NCBI GenBank assembly: GCA_048013815.1
Contig: CM106585.1
Coordinates: 3,100,001 to 3,164,000, forward strand
Length of the DNA stretch: 64,000 nucleotides
Direction of reading: 5' to 3'
DNA from: Setoptus koraiensis
Lineage: Eukaryota > Animalia > Arthropoda
This document shows positions 13,612 through 63,584 of the stretch, piece after piece. The first letter of the stretch is position 1, and each line of letters starts with the position of its first letter. A program made the translations under genes and the position numbers. The notes beneath the pieces were generated by a model. That model ran no database searches and was not told the DNA's origin. It saw only the letters and a list, made by a program, of their open reading frames with translations.

Positions 13612-14111
13612 NNNNNNNNNNNNNNNNNNNNNNNNNNNNNNNNNNNNNNNNNNNNNNNNNNNNNNNNNNNNNNNNNNNNNNNNNNNNNNNNNNNNNNNNN
13701 NNNNNNNNNNNNNNNNNNNNNNNNNNNNNNNNNNNNNNNNNNNNNNNNNNNNNNNNNNNNNNNNNNNNNNNNNNNNNNNNNNNNNNNNNNNNNNNNNNNN
13801 NNNNNNNNNNNNNNNNNNNNNNNNNNNNNNNNNNNNNNNNNNNNNNNNNNNNNNNNNNNNNNNNNNNNNNNNNNNNNNNNNNNNNNNNNNNNNNNNNNNN
13901 NNNNNNNNNNNNNNNNNNNNNNNNNNNNNNNNNNNNNNNNNNNNNNNNNNNNNNNNNNNNNNNNNNNNNNNNNNNNNNNNNNNNNNNNNNNNNNNNNNNN
14001 NNNNNNNNNNNNNNNNNNNNNNNNNNNNNNNNNNNNNNNNNNNNNNNNNNNNNNNNNNNNNNNNNNNNNNNNNNNNNNNNNNNNNNNNNNNNNNNNNNNN
14101 NNNNNNNNNNN
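13612..14111. other. Assembly gap (500 N)
   Basis: Run of N. Confidence 1.
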
Positions 14112-36300: not shown

Positions 36301-36448
36301 CTGACGCCTCCAGCTTCCAGTGCACTAGATCCGAATTGTATACAGCTAGCCTTCTGCTGTGCTAGATTCATTTAACTAGCAACTCAGCATTGAGCGTGCT
36401 AATCGCGTCTAGTTAGTGTTTCTCGCGCATAGCATACTGTGTGCCAAA

Positions 36449-37988
36449 GGACCTGTTGCATTTAGGGTCTCCAGAATCAAACTGGTCTGACATACATGAA
36501 TATAGTATTTTCGTGATCGGAAGAGCCTCCTGAGCACGAATATACCAATTGCATCATCTTTTAGTTCGACGTTTAGCCACTAGGCGGCGTTGCTGTTTTT
36601 GACTTTCGGGGCCTCTGGAGCCTCAGTCTCTTGTCGTAGAGACACGTTCTTGGTATCGTTGGATAGATCTTTGAAAGACGCATCTATGGAGGGTATAATT
36701 TTTCCCTAGACTCGAATCCAAGTCCGGAAAGAAAACAAAAGAAAACTTTGGCCCCATTTTGTGGGGTCCCAAGAATGTCCGCCCAGAGATTTGACAGCTC
36801 ATGAAAATAGCCCTATATAAGAGCTTCGAAATGATATATAATACATCGAAATCAAAATGAACGTCGATGACCAAAAATGAAAAAAACCACACACACATCC
36901 CCTCGAATTAGAGATATAAGGCAGATCGGGTGCTCTGCTGATTAGGAGCCAAGCTCGATTTCCCTAAAAATCGATACGTGGGCTATGAATGGGCCCATGA
37001 AGACGTTCTTGATCGTCCAGAAGTGCGATAGAGCCTACTTCCGGAGATAAGAAAAAACCCGAATTTCGGGCCTCTGAGGGGCCTCAAAACAATTATCTTC
37101 GCACAGTTGTCTAGATTGTTATATCAATATCGAAGTAGAGTGAAAATTCACACTCTGCGTCACCTGAACCGTTAGAAATTCACTGTTGGTTATGTAAGGT
37201 ACGCATACGCCCTGCTAGAGATGTTGGGAGGCCCAAGGCCGAGTCGGTGAAGATCGAAAAAGAGGTCAGTAGTACTGACAGTACCATTCAATCAGTGAAC
37301 GAGTGAAGAGTGGGGATAAATCACCGTAATTCTGATGTCAATATGCCTTCAAATACCCTTCAATTCCCGGAATGCGGTACCTCCGGTATCTCGATGATGA
37401 AGAATTTCCGCACCCCTGAAATACCCACTCGGGTATCAAGGTACAATACCCTACCCAAAAATACCCAAAATACCGAATTTAGGCTTGGCCATCATTCAAC
37501 GGAGCACCCGATCTGCCTTTTATCTCCAATTCGAGGGGATGTGTGAGTGGTTTTTTTCATTTTTGGTCATCGACGTTCATTTTGATTTCGATGTATTATA
37601 TATCATTTCGAAGCTCTTATATAGGGCTATTTTTATAAGCTGTCAAATCTTTGGGCAGACATCCCTGGGGCCCCACGAATTGGGGCCAAAGTTTTTCTTC
37701 GATTTTTTCCCGGACTTGGATTCGAGTTTAGGGAAAAATTATACCCTCCATAGATGCGTCTTTCAAAGATCCATCCAACGATACCAAGAACCCGTCTCTA
37801 CGACAAGAGACTGAGGCTCCAGAGGCCCCGAAAGTCAAAAACAGCAACGCCGCCTAGTGGCTAAACGTCGAACTGAAGGATGATGCAACTGGTATATTCG
37901 TGCTCAGGAGGCTCTTCCGATCACGAAAATACTATATTCATGTATGTCAGACCAGTTTGATTCTGGAGACCCTAAATGCAACAGGTCC
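36449..37988. mobile_element. Spy-type foldback MITE (~490-bp TIRs) inserted between AAA and TTT without TSD
   Basis: AAA|GGACCTGTTGCATTTAGGG...CCCTAAATGCAACAGGTCC|TTT; other HINE copies read GCTAAATTTAACTAATC at this site. AAA|TTT insertion without TSD is the published Spy hallmark. Confidence 0.8.
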
Positions 37989-38329
37989 TTTAACTAATCA
38001 ACATTGTAAGCTTTGAGTGTTCTAAATTCATCTAGTTAATTTCTCATAATACAGCTCACACCGTGCTATTTTTTTCTAGATAGAAAAAGCACTGATTTGT
38101 TCTACTCACGTGAATAAACGTAGCACCCAAACCTATCCCAATAGCTACTATTGTAGAAAACCAGAGAAAATTTCCATGTCCATCTTGCAAATCGTATTTC
38201 AATAGGAAGGACAATATGACCAAATACATTAAAATGTATTCATGTGGTACCGAAAATTTGATGAGTTTGATCGGAACGCCCTCGTGCTCCAGCACTAATC
38301 CCATTAATGACCCTGGGACATGTTCCGTT

Positions 38330-44552: not shown

Positions 44553-46607
44553 ACGGATTGTCCCTAGGTGTTGTTGCGATCATCTTCATTCTCGCAATAG
44601 CGTTCCGTTTCGGCTTTTCCGTCGCTGATGGTGGATGATTATGCTCGTTAGATGATGACATATATTCATGAAGTTCTTCCAATAAATCGGTCACCAGTCT
44701 GGCCCGGCATTCATGCGTCTAACATGAGGCGCACCTCCAGTACTGCTTCTGATCTCTCTTCTTGCCGATTAGAATGGAAAATCCGTTAATTAGAGCCAAA
44801 GGCTCCCCCTGGTTGATGACCGTGATCACAACACCCTTTTCTTCGAGATCGTAGGCATCTTCCATGGACGTGTCTGATGGATCTTCCATTTTGTTGATTG
44901 TAATGATGATAAAATTTAATTAAATGGATGCGAACTGTTTGCTTGGGCGACTGGATGTTGAATGACGGGGTGCGACCCCAAGTGCTGCTGAATTTATAGC
45001 AACTCACCATATTACTTGTTGCGCTACCGTAGGGCCCAGGCGGTGGCAATGGCGTTGCAATATTTTCGGCCCGGGCAGCGTTCATGGTGTCGTAATATCA
45101 TGTACCAAGACGGCGAGTGACGAAGAAATCGGGGCTCGTATTTTTAGCGCTTAATTTTAATTACGTAGCTATTCGTGTGGTGATGATGGATACGTTTATT
45201 CACGTGAGTAGAACAAATCAGTGCAATTTTCTATCTAGGGAAAATTAGCACAAGGAAGGCATCGGGAAGCATCTGGTAGGTTTCATCGTTCTAAATTTAC
45301 CTAGATTGTTAGTACAGTGAAAGCTAGGAGGCTCAGTCATTGGAAAACAATTATACAGTGGAAGCTTAGATGCTTACTAGTCAAAATTAGAACCGAGAAT
45401 GCTAGCTGTTTACAAATTGGAATTAGCACTAGGGAAGCTAGAAAGACGAAAACTAGGTAGATTTAGTGCAATAGAACGCTTAAATGTTGGTTTGTTAAAT
45501 TTAACAGAGGAACAGCTAGGAGGCAGTATCACTAGGAAACAATGATACAGAGAAGACTGAAATGCAAACTAGGTGGATCTAGCAAAGTAGAAGGCTAGCT
45601 GTTGACAATTAGGATCTGGCGCACCTGAAGCTAGTAGTCATGAAACTAAGAGATCACAGAACAATAGAAGCTACTCAAGTTGACAAGTGTCTCGCAGCAC
45701 AAGTTATGCTATGATTGATTAAACTAGGTGAAAGTGACGAACTTGAAGCTGAGATGCCCAGTAGAATGATTGGTTGTTGTAGCGATTAGGTCCCCACTCA
45801 GATCTTGATGAAACTTCCGGTGCGGGTCCCCCTTGACCCCAATAGAAAGGAAAAAGTAGTCCGGAAGTGCGGAAACTTCCGGTTCCGGTTTTACAAAAAG
45901 TTGAAGCTAGAGCTCCAAGATTCACCATAGAGACGTTTCAAGCTACGCTGAACACGATGACATAATTTTCAGCTCTGTGCGACTTCCGGTTTTCGAGATA
46001 TAGAGATATTACTAGGGTTAGAAGACCGGAAGTGACCAAATTATTGCTTCGCTGCGCTCGGGGATGCACATGCGGTGTGTCTGAGAACTCGGCCTGCGGC
46101 CTCGTATTCTGGAGGCCGTCACATCTCCGTCGTCGCTCCCGCGACGACTGCGTGCGACGGGAACCCTTCGGGTAGAGTTGATGAGCGCTTCAGGTATCGG
46201 GCTGCGCCCTCTACCCTCCGCTCACATGACTGCAATCCATGCACAGATGTAGGGAGAAAGGCGAAAAAAACCGACAAAAAATGAAAACAAATGGGACAAG
46301 AGGATATGGATAATCATTTTATTTTTATTATATCAATGTGATGACTGATATATGACCCAATACATGGTGTTGCTCACTATATGAACAGAATGGGTCCGCT
46401 GACCGCATCCGCACAGACCCGGCCACACCTCTTAATCAAATAAACCTTGATATCTCTTAAACCGGAAGTGATGGGAGATCGATTATGATTTCATCATTCT
46501 CCGCTAGGCGTCATCTACTAGATTCTGAATTTTCAGAGCTCTATCTCGATATTTTTGTATTTCCGGAACCGGAAGTTTCCGCACTTCCGGACTACTCAAC
46601 TCGTAAG

Positions 46608-47720
46608 TCCAAAATTAACAAAGGAATTCGACTTTGTTAATTTTGACAAAATTTTTTTTGTTCTCTGTGTTAAAGTATCTAAACGTTAACAATGTTAACC
46701 CTATGGGAATTTGACTCTGACGATTTTGACAATTTTTTTTTGTTCTCTGTGTTAAAGTATCTAAACGTTAACAATGTTAACCCTATGGGAATTTGACTTT
46801 GACGATTTTGACAAATTTTTTTTTGTTCTCTGTGTTAAAGTATCTAAACGCTAACAATGTTGACTCTATGGGAACAGAGTTAGATGGTCACAATTCGAAG
46901 TTCGGTGGTGATTATTCGAAGTTTGATGGTCACATTTCGGACTTCGAAATTCGAAATTGAAAAATTCGAATTTCCGATACGAGTTCCAGGTGCTTGTACA
47001 GAGTTCGATGGTCACAATTCGAAGTTCGGTGGTTACAATTCGAAGTTCGATGGTCACATTTCGAACTTCGAAATTCGAAATTGAAAAATTCGAATTTCCG
47101 ATACAAGTTTCAGGTGCTTGTACAGAGTTCGATGGTCACAATCCGAAGTTCGGTGGTTACAATTCGAAGTTCGATGGTCACATTTCGAACTTCGAAATTC
47201 GAAATTGAAAATTCGAATTTCTGATGACAGTTCCATCTGTACGTTCGATGTTCTGTGGTCAGTGTTCGATGGTCAATGTTCGATGGTCACATTTTGAAGT
47301 TCGGTGGTTAACAGGTGAAATAGCACACAACACACATAGTGCGCCATTGCGTCTTGGTGTATGTATTGAAATTATTAATTGTGGCGAAACTAACCGATAG
47401 AAGTGCACCAATTTTTGCATGCAGGCAGCTGACATGTACATCTAACTATGGTGAAAATTTGAGAAACCTGAATCTAGTTTGTGATACTCTTTAGATGGTA
47501 TGAAACGACCAAACGATCAATTTGTATAGCATACCGCACACGAGCATCTCAGCTGTACCACTATTTGGTATAGCTTAGATCTCTTGTACTCTTGGCTACC
47601 AAGTATGCATCAATTCATCGATTGCGAGCGCTAATAGGTTGTCATAAACTCCTTTGAATCCTTCAACAATACTTTTCCACACGAAAAATTAAGCGCTCGA
47701 AATACTGATTTGATCAGTAT
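46608..47720 (+). mobile_element. 5'-truncated HINE, near-identical to part of 61911-63360
   Basis: Same repeat order and same distinctive 3' body; two listed ORFs (47259-47441, 62892-63074) are identical. Confidence 0.8.
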
Positions 47721-48008
47721 GTATAGTTTGTGACACCATGTCAGAGATGAACATCTATGCCTGTCAGATCAGAGTAGTCGGTCATCATGTGTATCACGTT
47801 GTGATAGGAATTTGAAGAAGGCATAGATGTTCAACTCCGACATGTTATCACATACTCGCATCTATATTTAAACGGTACTTGATCGCTATGATGCATCCGC
47901 ATTTTCATGCACTATTTTATTTTCGAAAATCAGCCATAGTTTCCAAGTTTGTCAAGATAAAATTGCCAATTTTCGCACACTAGATAGCCATAGATAGACT
48001 GTTCGACA

Positions 48009-48851
48009 GTGCGAATTTGGCGACGTGTGGCGTATTATCCCGGTAGTAACACTTCTGTGGTTCCCAAGAATTCTGTCGGTCTCGGGTCTTATGTCAACCG
48101 ATCTCTTTGTGCACCTGTTAATATTCTTTCCACCCGCACAGACCCTATTAGGCCTGGGCTGGATTGCACAACTAAATATTATACACCTAATGAGATTCCC
48201 GTCCCCAATTTGACTAATGAGTTTCGGGTCATCGTTAAAGGCTACCTGGACGGACATTATTACACGCCTCCATTGACCTGTATGTCTTTGACTCTTTTGG
48301 TCAAGTTGCCCATGATTAGAGATAGAGTTGGACCCTATTTTGGTTATAATAATCCGGTCACCCCTCTTTGGGATCGCCCCACAGTTGTCCATGGAACCAT
48401 GAGTCCTCCACATTACATGGACTTCTCTGATTCTCAATTTAATACGAGAAATATTGCTTTCCCCACTGGAGGGGAGTATTCTGATGTTTGTAGGTGCCTT
48501 CGAATACGTGCCCTCATAAAGTATTTCTGCCTGGATTCCAAGTCCAGAGCTGAGTATACGATTGAACGTTTCAATGGTAAACGTGCCTATGACCATCATA
48601 TTGTTATTGAGGCATATACACTCGACGACTTTATCACGACGGCCATGTCCCCGGAATTTTACTTTATTATTCACAAGGAGTGGTTTGGCGTTTATAACAT
48701 CAAGTCTCGGATTGCGAACGTTTGGACCTCCGACCCCCTTGAGTGTTCGGATGATATGCCAGCACGGCCTGATCTTGGCGCAAGGCACGAAGAAATGAGA
48801 ATTTCTCTGAAAAACGGCTTCGTGTTACGAGAGGACTTAATTAGCGCTTAA
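48009..48851 (+). CDS. Uncharacterised 280-aa ORF, possibly degenerate tandem MATH/TRAF-like domains, truncated by a HINE
   Basis: Long open frame in unique sequence; weak motifs WRRVAYYPGSN, CLRIRALIKY, EYTIERFN; the last codons come from the HINE sub-TIR at 48843. Confidence 0.35.
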   Translation: MRIWRRVAYYPGSNTSVVPKNSVGLGSYVNRSLCAPVNILSTRTDPIRPGLDCTTKYYTPNEIPVPNLTNEFRVIVKGYLDGHYYTPPLTCMSLTLLVKLPMIRDRVGPYFGYNNPVTPLWDRPTVVHGTMSPPHYMDFSDSQFNTRNIAFPTGGEYSDVCRCLRIRALIKYFCLDSKSRAEYTIERFNGKRAYDHHIVIEAYTLDDFITTAMSPEFYFIIHKEWFGVYNIKSRIANVWTSDPLECSDDMPARPDLGARHEEMRISLKNGFVLREDLISA

Positions 48852-49697
48852 TTTTAATTAAGTAGCTACTGGGGTAGTGATGATGGATACGTTTATTCAC
48901 GTGACTATGTAATCCTATGGAGATTTGACTAAGTCACATTTGTGCGGAGTTAGGTGGTGACAAATCGAACTTCAAAATTGAAAATTCGAATTTCTAATAA
49001 GAATTTCATCTGCTCATTCGATGTTCGGTGGTCAGAGTTCGATTGTCACAATTCGATGGTCACAATTCGAAATTCGAAAATTGAAAATTGAAAATTCGAA
49101 TTCCTAATGATAGTTTCATCTGCTCGTTTGATGTTCGGTGGTCAGTGTTCGATGGTCACAGTTCAAAGTTCGGTGGTAACAATTTGAAGTTCGAAGATTG
49201 AAAATTTGAATTTCCGAAACCAGTTCCAGGTGCTCGTACAGTGTTCGATGGTCACATTTCGAAGTTCGAAATTCGAAAATTGAAAATTCGAATTCCTAAT
49301 GATAGTTTCATCTGCTCGTTCGATGTTTGATGGTCAGAGTTCGATGTTCGATGGTCAGAGTTCGATGGTCACAATTCGAACTTCGAAATTCAAAGTTGAT
49401 GCACTATAGCAAAGTGTGCGCCATTGACTCATTGGTGTGTCTAACTTAATTACTCATTGCGGCGAAACTGACTATTAAACTGACTAAATTCCACACGCAA
49501 GCAATCGACATGTGTATCATGCTGCGATAGAAATTGGGAGACCTTGTATTCTTTCTGTCATCTTTCGGCTACTCTGATCGACAGGCATAGATGATTATCT
49601 CCGACATGTTGTCACATACTCGCATCCATATTCCAACGATACTCGTCTATCCAAAAAATTAAGCGCTCGAGGTACTGATAGAATCAGTATCACTTGT
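48843..49697 (+). mobile_element. Complete HINE (~855 bp)
   Basis: 5' sub-TIR, TTCGA repeats, 3' sub-TIR, hairpin and ACTTGT. Confidence 0.88.
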
Positions 49698-49704
49698 TTT
49701 TTTT

Positions 49705-51664
49705 AGCGCTTAATTTTAATTAAGCTGCTATTGGGGTGGTGATTATGACTACGTTTATTCACGTGACTATGTAATCCTATGGAGGTTTGACTTAGTCAAA
49801 TTTGTGAGAATCCTGCTTGACATTACACATGTATTCCGATGTAGATTCGACTTGGTCTATTATCCCTTCACTCGAAAATATTTCGTATGCAATTCTATGG
49901 AGATTTGACTAGGTCACATTTGTGGGCAGTTCGGTGGTGACAAATCGAACTTCAAAATTGAAAATTCGAATTTCTAATAAGAGTTTTAGCTGATCGTCCA
50001 AAGTTAGTGGTTCAGTTTTCTTAGTTCCATGGTAGGAGTTCGGTGGTGACATTTCGAAATTCGAAATTGAAAATTCGAATTTCTGATGACATTTCCATCT
50101 GCTCGTTCGATGTTCGATGATCAGTGTTCGATGGTCAGTGTTCGATGGTCACAATTCGAAATTCGAAAATTGAAAATTCGAATTTCTGATGATAGTTTCA
50201 TCGGCTCTGTCGAAGTTCGGTGGTCAGAGTTCGGTGGTCAGTGTTCGATGGTCACAATTCGAAATTCGAAAATTGAAAATTCGAATTTCTGATGATAGTT
50301 TCATCGGCTCTGTCGGAGTTCGATGGTCAGAATTCGATGGTCAGAGTTCGATGGTCAGTGTTCGATGGTCACAATTCGAAATTCGAAAATTGAAAATTCG
50401 AATTTCTGATGACATTTCCATCTGCTCGTTCGATGTTCGGTGGTCAGAGTTCGGTGGTCAATGTTCGATGGTCACATTTCGAACTTCGAAATTCGAAATT
50501 GAAAATTCGAATTTCTGATGACATTTCCATCTGCTCGTTCGATGTTCGATGATCAGTGTTCGATGGTCAGTGTTCGATGGTCACAATTCGAAATTCGAAA
50601 ATTGAAAATTCGAATTTCTGATGATAGTCTCATCTGCTCTGTCGGAGTTCGGTGGTCAGTGTTCGATGGTCAGAGTTCGATGGTCACATTTCGAACTTCG
50701 AAATTCGAAATTGAAAATTCGAATTTCTGATGATAGTTTCATCTGCTCGTTCGATGTTCGTTGGTCAGAGTTCGATGGTCAGAGTTCGATGGTCACATTT
50801 CGAACTTCGAAATTCGAAATTGAAAATTCGAATTTCTGATGATAGTTTCATCTGCTCGTTCGAAGTTCGATGGTCAGAGTTCGATGGTCACATTTCGAAC
50901 TTCGAAATTCAAAATTGAAAATTCGAATTTCTGATGATAGTTTCATCGGCTCTGTCGGAGTTCGATGGTCAGAGTTCGATGGTCAGAGTTCGATGGTCAC
51001 ATTTCGAACTTCGAAATTCGAAATTGAAAATTCGAATTTCTGATGATAGTTTCATCTGCTCTGTCGGAGTTCGATGGTCAGAGTTCGATGGTCAATGTTC
51101 GATGGTCACATTTCGAACTTCGAAATTCGAAAATTGAAAATTCGAATTTCTGATGATAGTTTCATCTGCTCGTGTCGAGTTCGATGTGTCAGAGTTCGAG
51201 TTCGATGTCAGTTCGAGTTCGATGATCAGTGTTCGATGGTCACAATTCGAAATTCGAAAATTGAAAATTCGAATTTCTGATGATAGTTTCATCTGCTCTG
51301 TCGGAGTTCGATGGTCAGAGTTCGATGGTCAGAGTTCGATGGTCACATTTCGAACTTCGAAATTCGAAATTGAAAATTCGAATTTCTGATGATAGTTTCA
51401 TCTGCTCTGTCGGAGTTCGGTGGTCAGTGTTCGATGGTCAGAGTTCGATGGTCACATTTCGAACTTCGAAATTCGAAATTGAAAATTCGAATTTCTGATG
51501 ATAGTTTCATCTGCTCGTTCGATGTTCGATGGTCAATGTTCGATGGTCACATTTTGAAGTTCGTTGGTTGACAGGTTGTCATAAGCTCCTTTGAATCCTT
51601 CAACAATACTTGTCCACACGAAAAATTAAGCGCTCGAAATACTGATTTGATCAGTATTACTTGT
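49705..51664 (+). mobile_element. Complete HINE (~1.96 kb), head-to-tail with the previous copy
   Basis: Starts in the T-run that follows the previous element; both ends intact. Confidence 0.88.
49920..51560 (+). repeat. ~100-110 bp TTCGA-rich tandem array inside the HINE
   Basis: About 15 units of TTCGAAATTCGAAATTGAAAATTCGAATTTCTGATGATAGTTTCATCTGCTC..GTTCGATGGTCAGAG. Confidence 0.9.
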
Positions 51665-51783
51665 TTTGAAATCCTCCCTTTCTCTCGCACAAATCCGTAA
51701 GTAAATCCAAGCTGCATGAAAGATCGCAAGCATAACATGTCAATTCTCAGTTCATGTATCCATTGCCAGAGGAGAAAAGCTTC

Positions 51784-52245
51784 GGTTTTCGTAGCGATTA
51801 GGTCCCCACCCAGATTCTGATGAAACTTCCGGTATAGGTTCATATTGACCCAAATAAGACGATGAAATTACTCCGGAAGCCAGGAAACTTCCGGTTCCGG
51901 TTTGACATCAAGTTGAAGCTAGAGATCTGAAACCCACCAGATCGACGTTTCAGAGAATGCTGAATAGAATGGCTCACTTTTCAGCTCTGTGCGACTTCCG
52001 GTTTTCAAGATATCGGCTTATTTATAGGTTTGGAAGACCGGAAGTTGACGAATTTCAGCTTCGCTGCACTTGGTTATGGACCTGCGATGGGTCTGAGAAC
52101 TCGGCCTGCGGCCTCGTAATTCGGAGTCCTTCACATCCCCTTCGTCGCTCCCGCGACGACTGCGTGCGACGGGAACACTTTGGGTACGGTTGATGAGCGC
52201 TTCGGGTTTCGGGCTTCGCCCTCAGCCCTCCGCTCACATGTCTGC
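51784..52245. mobile_element. Merlin MITE fragment, one degenerate TIR
   Basis: GGTTTTCGTAGCGATTAGGTCCCC; truncated by the TIR at 52246. Confidence 0.75.
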
Positions 52246-54403
52246 GGGTGTTGTAGCGAATAGCGACCCAGTTAGATTTCGATGAAACTTTACACATGGG
52301 GTCCGTAGGGCCCCTTGACAACAGTTTGAGTGGTCCGGAAGTGCGGAAACTTCCGGTTCCGATTTTACAAAAAAAGAGAGCTACGGCAATGAAACTCGGT
52401 TGACTGATTGATTAGAGCATGTTGATCATGCTGAACTCGTTCTTAAGTCTCTGAGACTTCCGGTTCGGGAGATATCGAGGGAATTCAGGAGATAGGGGCG
52501 TTTCTGCTTCGTGCGCTTGCACAGAGCTCAATCTGAGCATGTGCAGACTCAATTCTGAGCGTGTGCGGACTTCATTCTGATCATGCGCAGAATTGATTCT
52601 GTGCCAGGGGTATGCTCGGGAGGATACTTCGGGGGGATCTGAGGCATTACCGCCACATAGAACCTCCAATGCTGAAATTCTATGAAAATTCTCTTAACTA
52701 ATGACTTGGTGGAACGATTCATGATGATTTGCTTCTATTAGATATGTCAGGAGACAAATGAACAATTAAAGAACGCCCTGTACGAACTGTAATCAATTGG
52801 TACGCTCTGTTCATATATAGGGATGCACACATTGGACCATTTTCTTCACTAACCATTTCTTCTCTTTTCACCCAATATCTACAGGCACTACAATGGATAC
52901 AGATTCACAGACCGACGAATATACCGAGGTGGAGAGCCAGGACTCGATACCGGCACCAATGCTGAGGGGTCACTGGGGTCCGGTTCGTCTGTACCGTGAG
53001 GCACATTTGGGGGATACCCTGGCATGTGCCCAATGGTGTATGGACGCCGGGATTCTCGGGACCCGCAAGCAATGCCGGATCCACAGAAAGCCACGGAGCC
53101 TCGAAGTCATCGAAGGCAAGCTCTTCTGGCGCTGTCGCCGATGTGACGACAGACTGTCAGTTCTAAGGGGGGGCACTGCCTTCGAGGACGCAAGGCTACC
53201 CCTTGGCAAAGTGCTCATGTTAGCACTTTGTTTTGCCAATGGGGACAGCTACGAGGCTACCCAGCGGAACTGCCTCTTTGAGGCGGAAGACATCGTCGCC
53301 AAGACGACCATCGCAAGATGGTTTACGATGTTCCGCGAGTTCGTGGTGGACGTGGCCCCCAAGCCATGGCCCCGATCTATGATCGGTGGCCGGGGGAAAA
53401 TCGTCCAGGTGGACGAGGCGCTGATCGGCCGGCGGAAGTATAACCGCGGCCGAGTCATACCGGGCAGCACCTGGGTGCTCGGTATGATCGACGAGGACAG
53501 GGCGGTCCAACTGCAGATCTGCCCAGGCCGCTCGAGAGCAGTCCTGGAGCCGATCATCCAGAGACACGTCCGCTCGGGCAGCGTCATCCACACGGATGGC
53601 TGGGCGGCCTACAGTGGCCTAGAAGCCCTAGGCTACGAACACCGAGTGGTCAACCACTCGGAAGAGTTCGTAGCCGATGATGGGACTCACACCCAGCGTA
53701 TCGAGTCCCAATGGAGGGCCCTTCGGAGGGATTTTGGACCAGGAGGTCGACGCCACGCCAGAGTTTCTACTCACCTGGCCAAATACATATGGCGCCGTGG
53801 ATGTCGCCAGTCTGGCTCTGATCCATTTGTACAACTACTCATATTAATAAAGATAACAGAATAAATTTAAATGAAATTATGTCTCAATTTTTCTCTTCTT
53901 TCTCTTAATTTCAACCATCCTATTACTTCTGTTTATGGATTGCAGTCATGTGAGCGGATGGTAGAGGGCGCAGCCCGATACCCGAAGCGCTCATCAACCC
54001 TGCCCGAAGGGTTCCCGTCGCACGAAGTCGTCGCGGGAGCGACGACGGAGTTGTGACGGCCTCCAGAATACGAGGCCGCAGGCCGAGTCTTCGAACTCAT
54101 CAGAGGTTCACTCTTGAATCCAGCAGAGCTGAAATTCCTCCACTTCCGGTCTTCCAAGCCAAGAAATATACCTATATCCTGAGAACCGGAAGTTGCACAG
54201 ATTTGAAAGTTATGCCATCGTGTTCAGCGTTGTCGAAAACATCGGTCTGGTGAGTTTCAGACCTCTAGCTTCAACTTAATGCTAAACCGGAACCGGAAGT
54301 TTCCGCACTTCCGGACTATCTTTTCCGGTCCATTGGGGTCAGAATGTACCCGTACCGGAAGTTTCATCAAAATCGGGGCGGGTCGCTAATCGCTACAACA
54401 ACC
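52246..54403 (+). mobile_element. Putative autonomous Merlin DNA transposon (2.16 kb)
   Basis: TIRs GGGTGTTGTAGCGAATAGCGACCC / GGGTCGCTAATCGCTACAACAACC around an intact transposase; arms homologous to the MITEs; own TSD not seen. Confidence 0.85.
52893..53864 (+). CDS. Merlin / IS1595-family (ISXO2-like) DDE transposase, intact 323 aa
   Basis: Zn-ribbon CRIH..WRCRRC; QVDEALIGRRKYNRGR, IHTDGWAAY, VVNHSEEFV..GTHTQRIESQW; no stops; acceptor-like site and AATAAA flank the ORF. Confidence 0.95.
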   Translation: MDTDSQTDEYTEVESQDSIPAPMLRGHWGPVRLYREAHLGDTLACAQWCMDAGILGTRKQCRIHRKPRSLEVIEGKLFWRCRRCDDRLSVLRGGTAFEDARLPLGKVLMLALCFANGDSYEATQRNCLFEAEDIVAKTTIARWFTMFREFVVDVAPKPWPRSMIGGRGKIVQVDEALIGRRKYNRGRVIPGSTWVLGMIDEDRAVQLQICPGRSRAVLEPIIQRHVRSGSVIHTDGWAAYSGLEALGYEHRVVNHSEEFVADDGTHTQRIESQWRALRRDFGPGGRRHARVSTHLAKYIWRRGCRQSGSDPFVQLLILIKITE

Positions 54404-55505
54404 AACAAACGACCCCAAAAACCGCAGATAGGACTCATGGCGCCGTAATACTAGAGGAGTAACAATACCAAGAATGTCAGAATCATGGATACGTTCTATA
54501 ACTCACAAAGTAGACCCAGAAATACTGATCACAGGTTTTGGCAAGAGTGATATACCGCTATATGTAGCCAACAGTATTGATAAACCAACTGAGGGTATTG
54601 TTAACGTCCTTGTAATGAATCCTCATGATAAAAACATCATATTAGAGAAAAAACAAAGGATCGCAACTTGGGAAAAACTACCAATAGAAGTGAGCATTAA
54701 CTCAATACAGACAGTTGACACCGAGAAAGGCGAAACTGAAATCGAGGTCGGCGACCAACTCAACAAGGCACAGATAGACGATATAATGAACCTAATCAAC
54801 GAGTACAGCGATGTGTTCATCGTCAACGGAGAGATTGGTAAAACAACACAAACATCGCATATAATAGAACTGACACCAGACGCCAAACCATTTATAGAAC
54901 CACTCAGACGCAAGAGCGAAAAGGAATTGGACGCCGTCGATTTGCAAGTCCAAGAGATGCATCGAGCCAAGCAAAAGTAGTTGGGCTTCAGCATATGTGA
55001 TAGTAAAAAAAAAGACGGCGGCCTCAGATTCTGCATCGACTTTCGTCGTTTGAACAAAATAACAAAAACTTGCTGTTATCCACTTCCTCGTTGTGACGAG
55101 ATTCTCGACCAAACAACAGGAAAATCATATAACACGAATCTCGACATGAACTCGGGCTATTGGCAAGTCCCAATGGACCCTAAATCAAAAGAATACACAG
55201 CCTTCAGAACTAGGCGCGGCCTTTGGCAATTTAGTTGTATGCCATTCGGCTTGGTAAACGCAGGAGCGACATTTCAACGTCTGATGAAAAGTGTCCTATC
55301 TCCACTGAAATCAACTGAGATATTAGTATATTTAGACGACGTTGTAATTTTTTCGAGTATATGGAGTTCTCACATGTCCCAATTGAAACTATTTGAAACT
55401 TAACGCCTTCAGGACTCACAATCAAACCTAGCAAGTGTGTATTCGGAACGAATAAACTAAAGTTCCTAGGCCATAAAGCTCAAAGGATGGTTTGACTCCA
55501 GAGCC
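54404..55505 (+). pseudogene. Ty3/gypsy pol fragment (pre-RT linker and RT)
   Basis: KKKDGGLRFCIDFRRLNKIT..YPLPR..LDMNSGYWQV..MPFGLVNAGATFQR..VYLDDVVIFS. Confidence 0.92.
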
Positions 55506-55512
55506 TGAAAAA

Positions 55513-56282
55513 ACAAGTGATACTGATTCAATCAGTATCTCGAGCGCTTAATTTTTTGGATAAACGAGTATCCTTGGAACATAGACCGGAGTATGTGATA
55601 ACATGTCGGAGATAAACAACTATGCTTGTCAGATCAGAGCAGCCGAGGAGCGACCAAATAAATACAAGTTCTTCAAATTTCTATCGCAGCATGATACACA
55701 TATTGATCGCCCACCACTATCGAAATCGGATCATCGAACTTCAACGAAGCAGATGAAACTATCATCAGAAATTTGAATTTTCAATTTCGAATTTCGAAGT
55801 TCGAAATGTGACCACCGAACTCTGACCATCGGACACTGACCACCGAACTCCGACAGAGCAGATGAAACTATCATCAGAGAATCGAATTTTCAATTTCGAA
55901 TTTCGAAGTTCGAAATGTGACCATCGAACTCTGACCATAGAACTAAGAACACTCAACCACTAACTTCGAACTAGCAGCTGAAACTCTCATCAGAAATCCG
56001 AATTTTCAATTTCGAATTTCGAAGTTCGAAATGTTACCACCGAACTCTGACCATAGAACTAAGAACACTCAACCACTAACTTTGAACGAGCAGCTAAAAC
56101 TCTTATTAGAAATTCGAATTTTCAATTTTGAAGTTCGATTTGTCACCACCGAGCTCCTCACAAATTCGACCTAGTCAAATCTCCATAGGATTGCATACGA
56201 AATATTTTCGAGTAAAGCGATAATAGACCAAGTCAAATCTACATCGGAATACATGTGTAATGTCTAGCAGGATTCTCACAAA
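55513..56282 (-). mobile_element. HINE 3' portion on the minus strand, interrupted by a Spy MITE
   Basis: ACAAGTGATACTGATTCAATCAGTATCTCGAGCGCTTAATTTTT and reverse TTCGA repeats. Confidence 0.8.
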
Positions 56283-57700
56283 GGACCACTTGCATTTAGG
56301 GTCTCCAGAATCAAACTGATTTGACATATATAAATTTAGTATTTTTGTGATCGGAAGAGCCTCCTGATCACGAATATGACTATTGTATCACCTTTCAGTT
56401 TGTCGTTTAGCCACTAGGCGGCTTTGCTGTTTTTCGCTTTGGGGGCCTATGGAGCACCAGTCCTTCGTCATAGAGACACGTTATAGGTATCGTTGAATAG
56501 ATCTCTGAAAGATGCATCTATAAAGAGTATGATTTTCACCTAGACTCAAATCCAAGTCGAAAAAAAACTGGAAATAAAACTTTGGCCCCATTTTGTGGGG
56601 TCTCAGGAATGTCCGCCCAGAGATTTGACAGCTCATGAGAATGACCCTATAAAAGAGCTTCAAAATGATATATAATTCAACGGAATCAAAATGAACGCCG
56701 ATGACCATAAATGAAAAAAACCACACACACCCCCCACCAAAAATAGAGACAAAAGGTAGATCGGGTGCTCCGTTGAATGACGGCCAAGTCCAAATTGGGT
56801 GTTTTGGGTATTAATGGGTAGGGTATCGTACCCTGATACCCGAGTGGGTGTTTCAGGGGTGCGGAAATTCTTCATCACCGTGATACCAGAGGTACCGCAT
56901 TCCGGGTATTTAAGGGTATTTGAAGGCATATTGACATTAGAATCACGGTGATTTATCTCCACTCTCCACTCATTCACTGATTGAATGGTACTGTCAGTAC
57001 TACTGACCCCTTTTACGATCGGCCTTGGGCCTCCCAACATCTTCAGCAGTGCGTATGCGTACCTAACATAACCAACAGTGAATTTCTAACGGTTCAGGTG
57101 ACGCAGAGTGTGAATTTCCACTCTACTTCAAAATTGATATAACAATCTAGACAACTGTGCGAAGACAGTTGTTTTGAGGCCCCTCTGAGGCCCGAAATTC
57201 GGGTTTTTTCTTATCTCCGGAAGTAGGCTCTACCTCACGTCTGGACTGTCGAGAACGTCTTCATGGGCCTATCCAGAGCCCACGTGTCGATTTTTATGGA
57301 AATCGAGCTTGGCTCCTAATCAGCAGAGCACCCGGTCTGCCTTTTATCTCTAATTCGAGGGGATGTGTGTGTGGTTTTTTTCATTTATGGTCATCGGCGT
57401 TCATTTTGATTCCGTTGAATTATATATCATTTTGAAGCTCTTTTATAGGGTCATTCTCATGAGCTGTCAAATCTCTGGGCGGACATTCCTGAGACCCCAC
57501 AAAATGGGGCCAAAGTTTTATTTCCAGTTTTTTTTCGACTTGGATTTGAGTCTAGGTGAAAATCATACTCTTTATAGATGCATCTTTCAGAGATCTATTC
57601 AACGATACCTATAACGTGTCTCTATGACGAAGGACTGGTGCTCCATAGGCCCCCAAAGCGAAAAACAGCAAAGCCGTCTAGTGGCTAAACGACAAACTGA
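56283..57700. mobile_element. Spy-type foldback MITE, right end in the gap
   Basis: CACAAA|GGACC start at a HINE AAATTT site; inverted arm 57360-57700. Confidence 0.75.
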
Positions 57701-58200
57701 NNNNNNNNNNNNNNNNNNNNNNNNNNNNNNNNNNNNNNNNNNNNNNNNNNNNNNNNNNNNNNNNNNNNNNNNNNNNNNNNNNNNNNNNNNNNNNNNNNNN
57801 NNNNNNNNNNNNNNNNNNNNNNNNNNNNNNNNNNNNNNNNNNNNNNNNNNNNNNNNNNNNNNNNNNNNNNNNNNNNNNNNNNNNNNNNNNNNNNNNNNNN
57901 NNNNNNNNNNNNNNNNNNNNNNNNNNNNNNNNNNNNNNNNNNNNNNNNNNNNNNNNNNNNNNNNNNNNNNNNNNNNNNNNNNNNNNNNNNNNNNNNNNNN
58001 NNNNNNNNNNNNNNNNNNNNNNNNNNNNNNNNNNNNNNNNNNNNNNNNNNNNNNNNNNNNNNNNNNNNNNNNNNNNNNNNNNNNNNNNNNNNNNNNNNNN
58101 NNNNNNNNNNNNNNNNNNNNNNNNNNNNNNNNNNNNNNNNNNNNNNNNNNNNNNNNNNNNNNNNNNNNNNNNNNNNNNNNNNNNNNNNNNNNNNNNNNNN
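57701..58200. other. Assembly gap (500 N)
   Basis: Run of N. Confidence 1.
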
Positions 58201-59331
58201 CGTGGTCAGAGTTCGATGGTCACAATTCGAACTTCGAACTTCGAAATTCGAAAATTGAAAATTCGAATTCCTAATGATAGTTTCGTCTGCTCGTTCGATG
58301 TTCGATGGTCAGAGTTCCGTGGTCAGAGTTCGATGGTCACAATTCGAACTTCGAAATTCGAATTCCTGATGAGAGTTTCAGATGCTTGTTCTATGTTCGA
58401 TGGTCAGAGTTCCGTGGTCAGAGCTCGATGGTCACAATTCGAAGTTCGAAATTCGAAATTGAAAATTCGAATTCCTGATGAGAGTTTCAGCTGCTCGTTC
58501 AATGTTCGATGGTCAGAGTTCCGTGGTCAGAGCTCGATGGTCACAATTCGAACTTCGAACTTCGAAATTCTAAATTGAAAATTCGGATTTCTGATAAGAG
58601 TTACAGCTGCTCGTTCGATGTTCGATGGTCAGAGTTCGATGTTCGATGGTCACAATTCGAACTTCGAAATTCGAAAATTGAAAATTCGAATTTCTTATGA
58701 TAGTTTAATCTGCTCTGTCGATGTTTGATGGTCAGTGTTCGATGTCCGAGGTTCGATGGTCACATTTCGAACGTCGAACTTCGAAATTCGAAAATTGAAA
58801 ATTCGAATTCCTGATGATAGTTTAATCTGCTCTGTCGATGTTTGATGGTCAGTGTTCGATGTCCGATGATCACATCCCGAACGTCGAACTTCGAAATTTG
58901 AAATTGAAAATTCGAATTTTCGATACGAGTTCCAGGTGCTCGTACAGAGTTCGATGGTCACAATTCGAAGTTCGCTGGTGACAATTCGAACTTCGATGGT
59001 CACATTTCGAACTTCAAGATTCAAAATTGATGCACTATAAGAAAGTGTGCGCCATTGACTAATTGGTGTGTCCAACTTAATTACTCATTGCGAAGAAACT
59101 GACTATTAGAATCTCACTAAATTCCATACGCAAGCAATCGACATGTGTATCATGCTGCGATAGAAATTGGGAGAACTTGTATTCATTCTGTCATCTTTTC
59201 GGCTACTCTGATCGACAGGCATAGATGATTATCTCCGACATGTTGTCACATACTCGCATCCATATTCCAACGATACTCGTCTATCCAAAAAATTAAGCGC
59301 TCGAGGTACTGATAGAATCAGTATCACTTGT
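58201..59331 (+). mobile_element. HINE 3' portion with TTCGA array
   Basis: Array, then 3' body, sub-TIR, hairpin and ACTTGT. Confidence 0.82.
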
Positions 59332-59789
59332 ATTATATCAATGTGATGACTGATATATGACCCAATACATGGTGTTGCTCACTATATGAACAGAATGGGT
59401 CCGCTGACCGCATCCGCACAGACCCGGCCACACCTCTTAATCAAATAAACCTTGATATCTCTTAAACCGGAAGTGATGGGAGATCGATTATGATTTCATC
59501 ATTCTCCGCTAGGCGTCATCTACTAGATTCTGAATTTTCAGAGCTCTATCTCGATATTTTTGTATTTCCGGAACCGGAAGTTTCCGCACTTTCGGACCAC
59601 TCAACTCGTGATATAGGGCCCCTACGGGGCCCATGTGTGAAGTTTCATCGAATTCTGAGTGGGGACCTAATCGCTACAACACCCGAATGATTTAGCAGAG
59701 CAGAAGGCTACTGATTAATTAGGATCAAGTGCACGAGGATCGAATAATAGCTAGCGTACATTATTGGGTCGTAATCAGCACTGTGGAAG

Positions 59790-60230
59790 GCACATGACTC
59801 AGTCATGCTGAGTGGAAGCTGATGATGCAAATGCTCTCAGCTATAACAAACACAATTAGCACAGTCAAAGGCACATAACTTGGATGAACAGCGTCATAGC
59901 TGAGGATTGAACAGTTCTCAGCTATGACACACACAATTAGCACAGTCAAAGGCACATAACTGTGCTGTACTGTGTGGAAACTGAAGATGCACATGCTCTC
60001 AGCTATGACACACACAATTAGCACAGTCAAAGGCACGCCAAAATTTACACAGCGTCATAGCTGAGGATGCACAATTTCTCAGCTATGACACACACAATCA
60101 GCACAGTCAAAGGCACATAACTCAATCATGTTAAGTGATAGCTGAGGATGCACAGTTTCTCAGCTAACACACGCGCAATTAATACTGTCAAAGGCACATA
60201 ACTCAGTCATACTATATGATAGCTAAGGAG
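59790..60230 (+). repeat. ~72-bp tandem repeat inside a HINE
   Basis: CTCAGCTATGACACACACAATTAGCACAGTCAAAGGCACATAACT, about 6 copies. Confidence 0.8.
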
Positions 60231-60507
60231 CGGACATTTCCTTGTAATCATGCGTTAAATTAGACTAGTTAGCGACGAAAGGCGTTATATAGTTGTATAG
60301 CTGAGATCTCTTGTATTCTCAGCTACCACACTCACATCAATTCATCGAATGCGAGCGTTAACAGGTTGTCATAAACTCTTCTGAATCCTTCATCAATACT
60401 TGTGGGTGTTGTAGCGAATAGTGCCCCAGTCAGATTTCGATGAAACTTCACACACGGGGCCCGTTGGGCCCAAAAACAATAACCTCGGTGGTGCGGCTTC
60501 TAATGGA

Positions 60508-60819: not shown

Positions 60820-60927
60820 CTTTCTAGCGCTTAACTTTATTTAAGTGCTAATGATGTAGTGTTGTCAAGATGTACCCGTACAGGGACGCACGGTGAGAGC
60901 TGTATTACGAGAGATAAACTAAATAGA

Positions 60928-61395
60928 GGACCTGTTGCATTTAAGGTCTCCAGAATCAAACTAGTCTGACATACATGAATATAGTATTTTCGTGATCGGA
61001 AGAGCTTTCTGATCACGAATACCAACGTATACCAATTGCATCATTCCTAAGTTCGACGTTTAGCCACTAGGCGGCGTTGCTGTTTTTCGCTTTGGGGGCC
61101 TCTGGAGCCTCAGTCTCTTGTCATAGAGACACTTTCCTGGTATCGTCGAATAGATCTTTGGAAGACGCATCTATAAAGGGTATAATTTTTCCCTAGACTC
61201 GAATCTAAGTCCGGGAAAAAATCAAAAGAAAACTTTGGCCCCATTTTGTGGGGCCCCAAGAATGTCCGCCCAGAGATTTGACAGCTCATAAAAATAGCCC
61301 TATGAAAGAGCTTCAAAATGATATATAATACAACGAAATAAAACTGAACGCCGATGACCAAAAATGAAAAAAACCACATACACATCCCCCACCGA
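60928..61395. mobile_element. Spy-type MITE, single arm
   Basis: GGACCTGTTGCATTTAAGGTCTCCAG arm homologous to 36449. Confidence 0.75.
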
Positions 61396-61419
61396 AAATT
61401 GGTATCCTTCCACCTATCT

Positions 61420-61841: not shown

Positions 61842-63584
61842 AAGGGTGTTTCAATCAAAGAGGTGATGGAGTACTGTCGAGGCTACGGCTGCCTTCCACA
61901 GTGCTTTTTTAGCGCTTAATTTTAATTAAGTAGCTATTGGGGTGGTTCTGGCAGATACGATTATTCACGTGGGTAGAACAAATCAGTGCTTTTTCCAACT
62001 AGGAAAAAATAGCACGGTGAAAGCTGTACTGTGAGAAATAAACTAGATAAATTTAGAACACTCAAAGCTTACAATGTTGATTAGTTAAATTTAGCACATA
62101 GAATGCTATGCGCGCGAAAACTAACTAGACACGATTAGCACGCTCAAAGCTGAGATGCTAACTAGATGAATTTAGCACAGCAGAAGGCTAGCTGTATACA
62201 ACTCGGATTTAGTGCACTGGAAGCTAGAGGCGTTAGAACTAGAAGATTGTAGTACAGCAGAAACTGCTCAACCATTCAAGGTATCTAAACGTTAACAATG
62301 TTAACTCTATGGGAATTCGACTTTGTTAATTTTGACAAAATTTTTTTTGTTCTCTGTGTTAAAGTATCTAAACGTTAACAATATTAACCCTATGGGAATC
62401 TGACTTTGACGATTTTGACGAATTTTGATTTTTTCTCTGTGTTAAAGTATCTAAACGTTACCAATGTTAACCCTATGGGAATCTGACTTTGTTAATTTTG
62501 ACAAATTTTTTTTTGTTCTCTGTGTTAAAGTATCTAAACGTTAACAATGTTAACTCTATGGGAATTTGACTTTGTTAATTTTGACAAAATTTTTTTTGTT
62601 CTCTGTGTTAAAGTATCTAAACGTTAGCAATGTTAACTCTATGGAGATTTGACAGAGTTCGATGGTCACAATCCGAAGTTCGGTGGTTACAATTCGAAGT
62701 TCGATGGTCACATTTCGAACTTCGAAATTCGAAATTGAAAAATTCGAATTTCCGATACTAGTTTCAGGTGCTTGTACAGAGTTCGATGGTCACAATTCGA
62801 AGTTCGGTGGTCACATTTCGAACTTCGAAATTCGAAATTGAAAATTCGAATTTCTGATGACAGTTCCATCTGTACGTTCGATGTTCTGTGGTCAGTGTTC
62901 GATGGTCAATGTTCGATGGTCACATTTTGAAGTTCGGTGGTTAACAGGTGAAATAGCACACAACACACATAGTGCGCCATTGCGTCTTGGTGTATGTATT
63001 GAAATTATTAATTGTGGCGAAACTAACCGATAGAAGTGCACCAATTTTTGCATGCAGGCAGCTGACATGTACATCTAACTATGGTGAAAATTTGAGAAAC
63101 CTGGATCTAGTTTGTGATACTCTTTAGATGGTATGAAACGACCAAACGATCAATTTGTATAGCATACCGCACACGAGCATCTCAGCTGTACCACTATGTG
63201 GTATAGCTGAGATCTCTTGTACTCTTGGCTACCAAGTATGCATCAATTCATCGATTGCGAGCGCTAATAGGTTGTCATAAACTCCTTTGAATCCTTCAAC
63301 AATACTTTTCCACACGAAAAATTAAGCGCTCGAAATACTGATTTGATCAGTATTACTTGTTTTCGATATTTGTCGATGCACTCTGGAAGTTACAGTGTGC
63401 AGAGAGAGACTGTGTGCAGCGCGAAATTGATAATTGTGCCAAGCGAATGGAACTTTTCTTGACCTCAACACAGTCTATTTGATTTGTTGTGCTGAATTTC
63501 ATTTGATCACCACTTCGAAAAGAATATGTGCTAGCGAGCAGCACAGTGTGTTTTCTCGATTCGCGCTTTGATTGAAACACCCTT
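61842..63584. mobile_element. Tc1/mariner-type MITE (~290 bp of own sequence) with TA TSD, split by a HINE
   Basis: TA|AAGGGTGTTTCAATCAAAG ... CTTTGATTGAAACACCCTT|TA. Confidence 0.75.
61911..63360 (+). mobile_element. Complete HINE (1.45 kb)
   Basis: TTTTTT|AGCGCTTAATTTT...AAAATTAAGCGCTCGAAATACTGATTTGATCAGTATTACTTGT|TTT. Confidence 0.9.

Follow-up and report, generated by a model that had tools for sequence, protein, structure and literature searches.

The 13.9-kb stretch that lies between two Merlin ends was probably formed when one 908-bp Merlin MITE, inserted a single time, was later split by at least 12.7 kb of other repeats through a HINE-linked insertion and repair synthesis, and the 13.9-kb unit as a whole would then be a bystander. 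Distant, matched TIRs with a perfect TSD can, in such a case, be one small element that was split after its insertion. The coordinates below refer to the window, which is the whole 64,000-nt stretch of DNA that was analysed.

Outer ends and target site

The outer ends, the duplicated part of the MITE, and the surrounding target are listed by position.

45141–45771, plus strand: 5' part of the host HINE (left flank and target of the MITE insertion), 88–94% identical to many dispersed copies that run straight into the right flank
45764–45771, unstranded: left copy of the TSD GAATGATT, supported by paralogous empty sites
45772–46606, plus strand: Merlin MITE, family positions 1–835, with the left TIR at 45772–45817; five other copies align to the whole of it at 98%
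46327–46606, plus strand: left copy of the 280-bp duplicate, MITE positions 556–835, with 3 differences from 59332–59611
59332–59684, plus strand: Merlin MITE, family positions 556–908, with the right TIR at 59639–59684; aligned to five copies
59332–59611, plus strand: right copy of the 280-bp duplicate, MITE positions 556–835, a 99% direct repeat of 46327–46606
59685–59692, unstranded: right copy of the TSD GAATGATT, supported by paralogous empty sites
59685–60400, plus strand: 3' part of the host HINE (right flank) with 81-nt tandem units, which rejoins the left flank in other copies

The inverted ends are 46-nt TIRs with GG at the start and 42 of 46 positions in agreement; the same TIR pair is seen in all five other copies of the MITE family. 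Directly outside them, the two copies of the 8-mer are identical at 8 of 8 positions, a match for which the chance expectation is ~1.5e-5. The genome has at least nine further copies of the flanking repeat in which the stretch matching the left flank and the stretch matching the right one overlap by exactly 8 bp; these are paralogous empty sites, with the 8-mer present a single time and no insert. When the empty site of this locus is rebuilt with a single 8-mer, it aligns to two paralogs without gaps over 120 of 120 bases at 95–96% identity, and a start resembling a HINE 5' end is found at ~45144 in the left flank. The matched ends, the TSD, and the rejoining flanks are all explained by a single insertion of the 908-bp MITE into a HINE. 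The initial annotation had described a ~45-bp TIR pair set 13.9 kb apart, an identical 8-mer on both sides, and flanks that rejoin into a continuous HINE, and these observations were all borne out. Some contigs from public data have loose ends at 59685 that resemble an empty site, but these carry the C of the paralogs rather than G and were assigned to other copies of the host repeat.

Elements of the Merlin superfamily have TIRs that start with GG and TSDs of 8 or 9 bp (PMC8101967). The 908-bp MITE has terminal 5'-GG TIRs, and the copy described here has an 8-bp TSD; among the five other copies, one has an 8/8 TSD, one has a 7/8 TSD, two lack a TSD, and one has a damaged left end. Nothing about the 908-bp element is unusual for this superfamily.

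The 280-bp duplication

Taking out the interior together with one of the 280-bp copies leaves a 908-bp element whose whole length aligns without gaps, at ~98% identity, to the five other MITE copies found in 48.7 Mb, each of which is itself 908 bp long and ~98% identical. Judged from these alignments, the outer ends belong to a single 908-bp Merlin MITE, of which they are overlapping parts, and not to two elements. The two 280-bp copies differ from each other at 3 positions, compared with 8–15 differences from every other copy of the family, and they have 4–5 private substitutions in common. These few mutual differences and common private substitutions show that both 280-bp copies come from this MITE copy.

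The initial annotation missed the 280-bp direct repeat that brackets the interior. Local tandem duplication was considered as a source of the interior and rejected, given that similar stretches to the right of the element are 84–88% identical (96% at best, over 727 bp), compared with 99% for the 280-bp repeat.

Contents of the interior

Between the two MITE parts, the following features can be recognized.

46607–46622, unstranded: 16-nt filler at an abnormal left junction, matching nothing else in the genome search or the window
46623–47729, plus strand: 5'-truncated HINE that begins in the middle of its first 82-nt tandem unit; 88% identical to 62312–63353 of the window, whose 5' part has no counterpart here
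47730–48840, unstranded: palindromic piece resembling a HINE 3' region, plus rare sequence; includes a 280-aa ORF at 48009–48851
48841–49700 and ~49703–51666, plus strand: two head-to-tail HINEs with 109-nt central arrays
51784–52245, plus strand: 462-bp Merlin-end fragment that adjoins the autonomous Merlin, 81% identical to 45772–46233; other copies of the fragment reach 92%
52246–54403, plus strand: autonomous Merlin of 2158 bp with a 323-aa transposase ORF at 52893–53864; no TSD at the site
54404–55507, plus strand: internal fragment of a retroelement pol with RVT_1 at 54981–55403; single copy in the searched genome
55508–56282, minus strand: inverted HINE, interrupted near its 5' end by a foldback-like element; loose ends at 56282 correspond to its continuation in other copies
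56280–57700, unstranded: foldback-like element with TIRs of ~380–500 bp, truncated by the gap with ~117 bp missing; 87% identical to a complete copy at 36445–37991
57701–58200, unstranded: assembly gap of 500 N; depth is zero in four runs, none of which has a bridging contig
58201–59331, plus strand: 3' part of a HINE whose exact 3' terminus is the right interior edge; its last 132 bp match HINE 3' ends

These parts amount to at least 12.7 kb and comprise five HINE copies or fragments, the Merlin-end fragment, the autonomous Merlin, the pol fragment, and the foldback-like element. The HINEs, the putative gypsy reverse transcriptase, and the intact Merlin transposase that the initial annotation placed inside the composite have counterparts in this inventory, which includes several HINEs, the RVT_1 domain of the pol fragment, and a transposase ORF that carries a DDE_Tnp_IS1595 domain and retains its DDE residues. 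For the Spy MITE of the same annotation, the foldback-like element at 56280–57700 is the candidate. The 280-aa ORF that had also been listed does exist, but it is open on both strands, has low Atlas recognition, and yields no Pfam match, and thus is probably a chance ORF rather than a gene. The inverted duplicate formed by 56395–56776 and 57320–57700 might be mistaken for an assembly artefact, but it corresponds to the TIRs of the foldback-like element, as seen in the complete copy. An ORF at 57624–58274 that spans the gap is an artefact of the N run.

The HINEs resemble DINE-1-like non-autonomous Helentrons, which are characterized by subterminal inverted repeats, central tandem repeats, and a 3' palindrome (Thomas, Vadnagara and Pritham 2014, PMC4067079). 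Those found here have 13-nt subterminal inverted repeats, with the 5' motif AGCGCTTAATTTT pairing with the 3' motif AAAATTAAGCGCT; they have central tandem repeats, including the 109-nt arrays; and close to the 3' end they carry a short palindrome, a hairpin with an 8-bp stem located 7 nt from the terminus. HINEs and Helentrons are described as inserting at TT or T-rich sites without modification of the target, and they are not known to duplicate it (PMC4067079). At this locus the 3' end is joined normally at a TT site, but the other side has an irregular joint with a 280-bp target duplication.

Interior edges and proposed mechanism

On the right, the interior finishes with an exact HINE 3' terminus, hairpin included; it meets the MITE at a TT site (positions 555/556), on the final T of a T run. 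The last 132 bp of this HINE are 98–100% identical to many HINE 3' ends. A joint at the same base, made by a different HINE subfamily, is present at G000:C2:584411–584433 in a MITE copy that is 91% identical, and a third occurrence of a HINE 3' end joined at MITE 555/556 was not encountered in the genome search. At this second locus, no part of MITE positions 1–835 lies within 10 kb upstream, and a 500-N gap is located 41 bp from the joint. The use of the same TT by two HINE subfamilies in two MITE copies suggests a site preference beyond 'T-rich', although both this point and the target duplication rest on very few loci in an assembly with a gap.

The left interior edge is of another kind. 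After MITE position 835 comes the 16-nt filler, followed by the middle of the array of the 5'-truncated HINE. A regular 5' joint, in which MITE position 555 would be followed by a HINE 5' end, had no exact match in the genome search. With the HINE joined after position 555 on the right and the irregular joint located after position 835 on the left, MITE positions 556–835 are present on both sides. Among 27 HINE 3' ends in the 264 kb around the window, this locus is the only one at which the downstream flank is duplicated upstream.

One account of such a structure is plain growth in place, in which the MITE was filled stepwise by ordinary nested insertions with normal ends and decayed later. 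This account would suit the dense nest of repeats in the region, the normal HINE end at the preferred TT site, and the one clean nesting, that of the foldback-like element within the inverted HINE at 56280. However, ordinary insertions neither duplicate 280 bp of their target nor leave MITE positions 1–835 uninterrupted on the left. Furthermore, the left edge combines filler with the middle of a tandem array and has no transposon end, the internal Merlin lacks a TSD, and the pol fragment is cut at both ends. Unless the assembly is wrong about the 280-bp duplication, that duplication contradicts plain growth, which we consider very unlikely. The initial annotation had included growth of a ~0.9-kb MITE in place among its readings; the 908-bp MITE and the secondary nature of the interior are upheld by the ungapped ~98% alignment to five copies, and it is the plain nested insertions that do not fit. 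Alternative transposition mediated by Merlin was also rejected, as neither interior edge coincides with a Merlin TIR.

In the preferred reading, by contrast with plain growth, a HINE-linked event would supply the duplication. A non-autonomous 908-bp Merlin MITE would have inserted into a HINE and created the 8-bp TSD, and at least 12.7 kb of other repeats would later have come to lie inside it. The HINE-linked insertion, of the rolling-circle type used by Helentrons, may have joined its 3' end at the TT site of the MITE, while on the other side an uninterrupted template would have been copied by DNA synthesis that started at MITE position 555 and reached 835. The product of this synthesis would then have been end-joined to incoming or resident DNA at its broken 5' side. 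These events might have occurred in one step, by one-ended integration, or in two, if a normal insertion was followed by a break that was repaired by aborted synthesis-dependent strand annealing and end joining. The mechanism proposed for the 280-bp duplication is drawn from a single locus, and a HINE-linked insertion with a target duplication of this size is not predicted by the standard model of Helentron insertion.

Aborted synthesis-dependent strand annealing with end joining follows P-element breaks in Drosophila. The present locus resembles its products in the partial copying of an intact template, the filler at the joint, and the partial duplication beside the break. Unlike the P-element case, the process is deduced here from the final sequence alone and would require an uninterrupted template allele, which was not observed.

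A more specific proposal, which we view as doubtful, is that the locus is a natural footprint of one-ended Helentron/HINE integration. The 3' end would have been joined at the TT in the MITE while the 5' end failed, the free target end would have been extended by 280 bp and end-joined to the truncated 5' side, and a mosaic of neighbouring repeats of at least 12.7 kb would have been carried in by composite rolling-circle transposition. If true, this would be evidence, at the level of sequence, for the order in which Helentron integration joins strands and for the transfer of repeat mosaics as blocks. Searches for a donor of the interior with 47700–49000, 51600–56400, and both junction stretches returned single repeat families and never the same joints (two sequences, 48.7 Mb).

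The assembly gap

The true locus might be simpler than the assembly shows, consisting of a plain 908-bp MITE or of a MITE with one ordinary HINE insertion, if the joint at 46606/46607 were chimeric, if the scaffold had been joined wrongly over the 500-N gap, or if two haplotypes had been mixed. False duplications are known to appear as 99% duplicates on either side of a gap, and such a duplicate is found here, with the gap lying inside the interior. Nine 500-N gaps are present in the surrounding 264 kb, which indicates that contigs are short in this region, and gaps of the same size occur beside HINE arrays elsewhere.

Public data from four runs, belonging to four studies, were compared with positions 55000–60200 of the window as Logan contigs of ~100 bp, a length that cannot link across the 280-bp repeat; X5 and X6 are two filings of one data set. 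No contig of this length from the four runs bridges 57701–58200. Every contig that covers the private sites 59384 and 59389 shows the common letter of the family, which is weak evidence for an artefact because such contigs drop minor variants, and the letters of the window at 59514 and 59552 do occur in run X1.

Several features of the locus speak against an artefact. Neither duplicate abuts the gap, the left one being 11.1 kb away from it and the right one 1.1 kb. The left joint is located well inside the gap-free stretch 14112–57700 and lacks a shared repeat through which a mis-join could arise. The same private substitutions on both 280-bp copies indicate that neither came from other copies of the MITE, and with a mixture of haplotypes the same 908 bp would have to have received two large insertions independently. 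In addition, the TSD and the continuity of the flanks independently match the order and orientation of the scaffold. Overall, an assembly artefact seems improbable, although it deserves more weight than plain growth.

The internal Merlin and possible movement of the unit

The transposase ORF of the internal Merlin matches DDE_Tnp_IS1595 (PF12762, E 8.2e-21 in Pfam) and is full length in comparison with relatives of 300–345 aa. Residues D174, D235, and E271 are invariant among 14 relatives, and the element at 52246–54403 combines the domain with an intact DDE triad. An independent contig encoding the exact transposase was not on record in a contig look-up. The 8-mers beside the element, ATGTCTGC and AACAAACG, do not form an 8-bp TSD. 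A twin that is 93.6% identical lies 69 kb away at G000:C1:3223295–3225451 and has a 7/8 TSD; the family makes TSDs, and the flanks of the internal copy are rearranged.

The MITE and the 2158-bp Merlin have identical terminal 18 nt. The first 480 bp of the MITE are ~82% identical to the right end of the larger element, and its last 150 bp are ~79% identical to the left end, which makes the MITE an element whose ends are shared with one that encodes a Merlin transposase. With subterminal regions only ~80% alike, the internal Merlin represents a sister lineage rather than an evident master. The group as a whole resembles the Merlin superfamily, whose DNA transposons and MITEs were reportedly described by Feschotte in 2004, in its GG TIRs, its 8-bp TSD, its DDE_Tnp_IS1595 transposase with a conserved triad, and its short gene-less derivatives with ends common to an autonomous relative.

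The presence of a transposase between matched ends invites comparison with bacterial composite transposons such as Tn5 and Tn10, in which two IS copies flank the cargo. The likeness lies in the inverted ends of a long stretch with unrelated DNA and in the one TSD around the whole. The initial annotation had raised the possibility of a eukaryotic analogue; on that reading, the 13.9-kb unit, bounded by Merlin TIRs and carrying its own transposase, would transpose as a whole. The outer TIRs are identical to those of a young 908-bp family, and the intact transposase inside comes from a related lineage with the same terminal 18 nt and subterminal regions ~80% alike, both of which speak for such a unit. 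In bacterial composites, however, two complete elements form the ends, whereas here the left end comprises positions 1–835 and the right end positions 556–908 of one element. All five close relatives are 908 bp long, and it takes no more than the insertion of the small element to explain the TSD and the private substitutions. The search that had been proposed, for the same interior between these TIRs with different TSDs, found only the 908-bp relatives in 48.7 Mb, and in the same 48.7 Mb no interior junction recurs and the whole unit is not seen at other sites with other TSDs. A mobile composite is therefore hardly credible as an explanation of the locus, and a tempting but unsupported claim of a eukaryotic composite transposon can be removed. 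Since the outer TIRs are intact, mobilisation of the large unit is conceivable in principle, and it has left no trace of movement. At least two intact copies of the Merlin transposase exist, one of them at this locus, and thus the Merlin family, on the evidence of these reading frames, may still be active.

Outer ends and the MITE family

The ends of the proposed 13.9-kb composite are as the initial annotation described them. Inverted repeats at the left end (45772) and the right end (59684) match at 42/46 positions and both start with GG, and the identical 8-mer reported for the two sides, GAATGATT, lies directly before the former and directly after the latter. The proposal that the flanks rejoin also withstood scrutiny. 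The outer flanks belong to a dispersed repeat, the host HINE (a DINE-1-like non-autonomous Helentron). Both flanks match at least nine other copies of this repeat, and in each the left and right matches share exactly eight bases. When the empty site is rebuilt by joining the left flank, with one 8-mer, to the right flank, it gives a gapless 120-base alignment to two of these copies (95-96%). Given this eight-base overlap and the gapless alignment, both ends mark a single insertion, which left an 8-bp target-site duplication (TSD).

The window spans G000:C1:3100001-3164000, and genome searches covered two sequences (G000:C1 and G000:C2), 48.7 Mb in total. The first 835 bases of the structure (45772-46606) have full-length 98% matches at five other places. 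Joined to 59612-59684, they make up a 908-bp element, which aligns over its whole length and gaplessly to those five copies (97.7-98.0%), each 908 bp long. The 8-bp TSD is perfect at one of the five and matches at 7/8 positions at another. Since such features fit the published hallmarks of the Merlin superfamily (GG at the termini, a TSD of 8 or 9 bp and a DDE_Tnp_IS1595 transposase), this is an ordinary, young family of Merlin MITEs. At one 908-bp copy (L004, G000:C2:2036995-2037902), no TSD was seen and the left flank resembles MITE positions about 541-552; this copy may lie within another member of the same family.

A 280-bp direct repeat brackets the interior

Parts of the split MITE (family positions count along the 908-bp element)
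45772-46606, left part, family positions 1-835
59332-59684, right part, family positions 556-908

The MITE in the window is more than simply interrupted. Two copies of family positions 556-835, one at 46327-46606 and the other at 59332-59611, form a direct repeat that brackets the interior, a duplication that the initial annotation overlooked. The two copies differ at 3/280 sites, versus 8-15 differences between each of them and every other family copy, and they have in common four or five substitutions absent from all other family copies. Given the few mutual differences and these private substitutions, both stem from the window's own MITE rather than from other family members.

Edges of the interior

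On its right (59331/59332) the interior finishes in an exact HINE 3' terminus, with a subterminal repeat, a hairpin with an 8-bp stem and a short tail. Over 132 bp, its identity to many other HINE ends is 98-100%. In the MITE, the joint falls on the final T of a T run. Comparison of window positions 59326-59348 (about 1937 in locus L001) with G000:C2:584411-584433 (locus L010) showed that this joint, at that very base (family position 556), occurs once more in the 48.7 Mb searched. At the second site, which has a 500-N gap 41 bp from the joint, the MITE copy is only 91% identical and the HINE belongs to a different subfamily, whose hairpin differs in both loop and stem. The two joints are read as independent events at a preferred site, in line with the TT or T-rich targets that HINEs are known to favor, and position 556 looks like a site-specific hot spot for HINE joining.

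The left edge (46606/46607) is no transposon end. MITE position 835 is followed by 16 bases without any other match, after which a HINE starts midway through its own first 82-nt tandem unit and lacks its 5' end (as compared with the copy at 62312-63353). The regular joint of MITE position 555 with a HINE 5' end was not found in the 48.7 Mb.

Contents of the interior

Features between the two parts of the MITE
46623-47729, 5'-truncated HINE
47730-48840, HINE-3'-like palindromic piece and rare sequence
48841-51666, two HINEs, head-to-tail
51784-52245, Merlin-end fragment (462 bp)
52246-54403, autonomous Merlin
54404-55507, retroelement pol fragment (RVT_1)
55508-56282, inverted HINE, interrupted by a foldback-like element
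56280-57700, foldback-like element
58201-59331, 3' part of the HINE forming the right edge

The HINEs and the reverse transcriptase (RVT_1) noted earlier are thus recovered, as is the intact Merlin transposase. Its 323-aa ORF carries an IS1595-type DDE domain, is full length relative to 300-345 aa relatives from insects and other animals (best 54-56% identity), and retains D174, D235 and E271. A full-length twin on the minus strand 69 kb away (L009, G000:C1:3223295-3225451) shares 93.6% identity with 52246-54403; its transposase frame is open and its TSD matches at 7/8 positions. The autonomous family may be active now or have been so recently. No TSD surrounds the window's autonomous Merlin, which indicates that at least one of its flanks has been rearranged.

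The 280-aa ORF exists as a frame, with a GTG start. It was given low recognition by Atlas and no match in a Pfam search, and the region is open on both strands for about 840 bp, at 48009-48851 (+) and 47952-48788 (-). The 48009-48851 region has no family match and one other copy in the 48.7 Mb (83%, G000:C2:891440-891947). This ORF and its opposite-strand counterpart probably arose by chance within a rare repeat.

Among public sequencing runs available as contigs, the single-copy pol stretch 55000-55347 is covered by run X4 (organism B) only; X1, X5 and X6 give no coverage. The tables of X5 and X6 are identical, and these are probably one data set filed twice.

The gap and assembly continuity

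The region is rich in repeats and its assembly fragmented: nine gaps of exactly 500 N occur in 264 kb (G000:C1:3000001-3264000), including window positions 13612-14111 and 57701-58200, and those inspected adjoin tandem arrays of HINEs. The gap at 57701-58200 conceals at least 117 bp of the foldback-like element (judged by the copy at 36445-37991), as well as the 5' sequence missing from both the inverted HINE and the last HINE. No coding sequence spans it, and the ORF listed there is an effect of the N run. The inverted duplicate adjoining the gap was considered as an assembly artifact and rejected, as it represents the two TIRs of the foldback-like element, complete at 36445-37991. The element measures about 1.55 kb and has TIRs of about 500 bp; a second copy (56280-57700) is cut by the gap, and a fragment lies at 60927-61399. 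It may be the "Spy MITE" of the initial annotation.

An assembly error might produce the split-MITE layout, given that a gap is present and contigs are short. Public-run contigs (about 100 bp here) do not bridge 57701-58200, and contigs of that length cannot connect sequence across a 280-bp repeat. However, neither 280-bp duplicate borders on the gap, and the left joint lies well within the gap-free stretch 14112-57700 and has no repeat able to cause a mis-join, making such an error unlikely. Had two haplotypes been mixed, the same 908 bp would have had to take up a large insertion twice, independently. Scaffold order and orientation have assembler-independent support from the TSD, from the unbroken host repeat and from the private substitutions that the two duplicates share.

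Origin of the split MITE

Sequence comparison shows a single MITE insertion with a secondary interior, whose right edge is a regular HINE end at a preferred site and whose left edge is an irregular joint with filler; the 280-bp duplication derives from the same MITE copy. The suggestion of a roughly 0.9-kb MITE that grew in place thus stands as to the 908-bp element and its secondary interior. Plain nested growth is contradicted by the duplication, the irregular left joint and the TSD-less internal Merlin. The alternative suggestion, a composite-transposon analog moving as one unit, is not supported: it runs counter to how the ends are built and to the lack of a second copy in the 48.7 Mb. Close MITE relatives are all 908 bp; the interior edges recur nowhere in the 48.7 Mb except at the independent HINE joint at G000:C2:584411-584433, and genome searches with 47700-49000 and 51600-56400 returned single repeat families only. 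Movement as a unit is without evidence; with the outer TIRs intact, mobilization would be conceivable in principle. The locus consists of known families (the Merlin MITE and an autonomous Merlin) nested among HINEs, plus one unusual scar.

For this scar, we infer that DNA synthesis on an uninterrupted template may have run from MITE position 555 through 835, followed by end-joining to the broken 5' side, which fits because the duplication begins exactly at the HINE insertion site. Such synthesis could follow a one-ended HINE integration, with the transposase joining the 3' end alone, or a regular insertion with a later break, aborted strand annealing from an uninterrupted allele and end-joining. 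The interior would have either arrived as a block or gained later additions. End bypass and composite rolling-circle transposition have been proposed for HINEs, and could explain the arrival of a mosaic of several same-strand HINEs and intervening DNA as a block. The event generating the duplication appears to be rare, because only one of the 27 HINE 3' ends in 264 kb around the window, that at the right edge of the interior, has its downstream flank repeated upstream.
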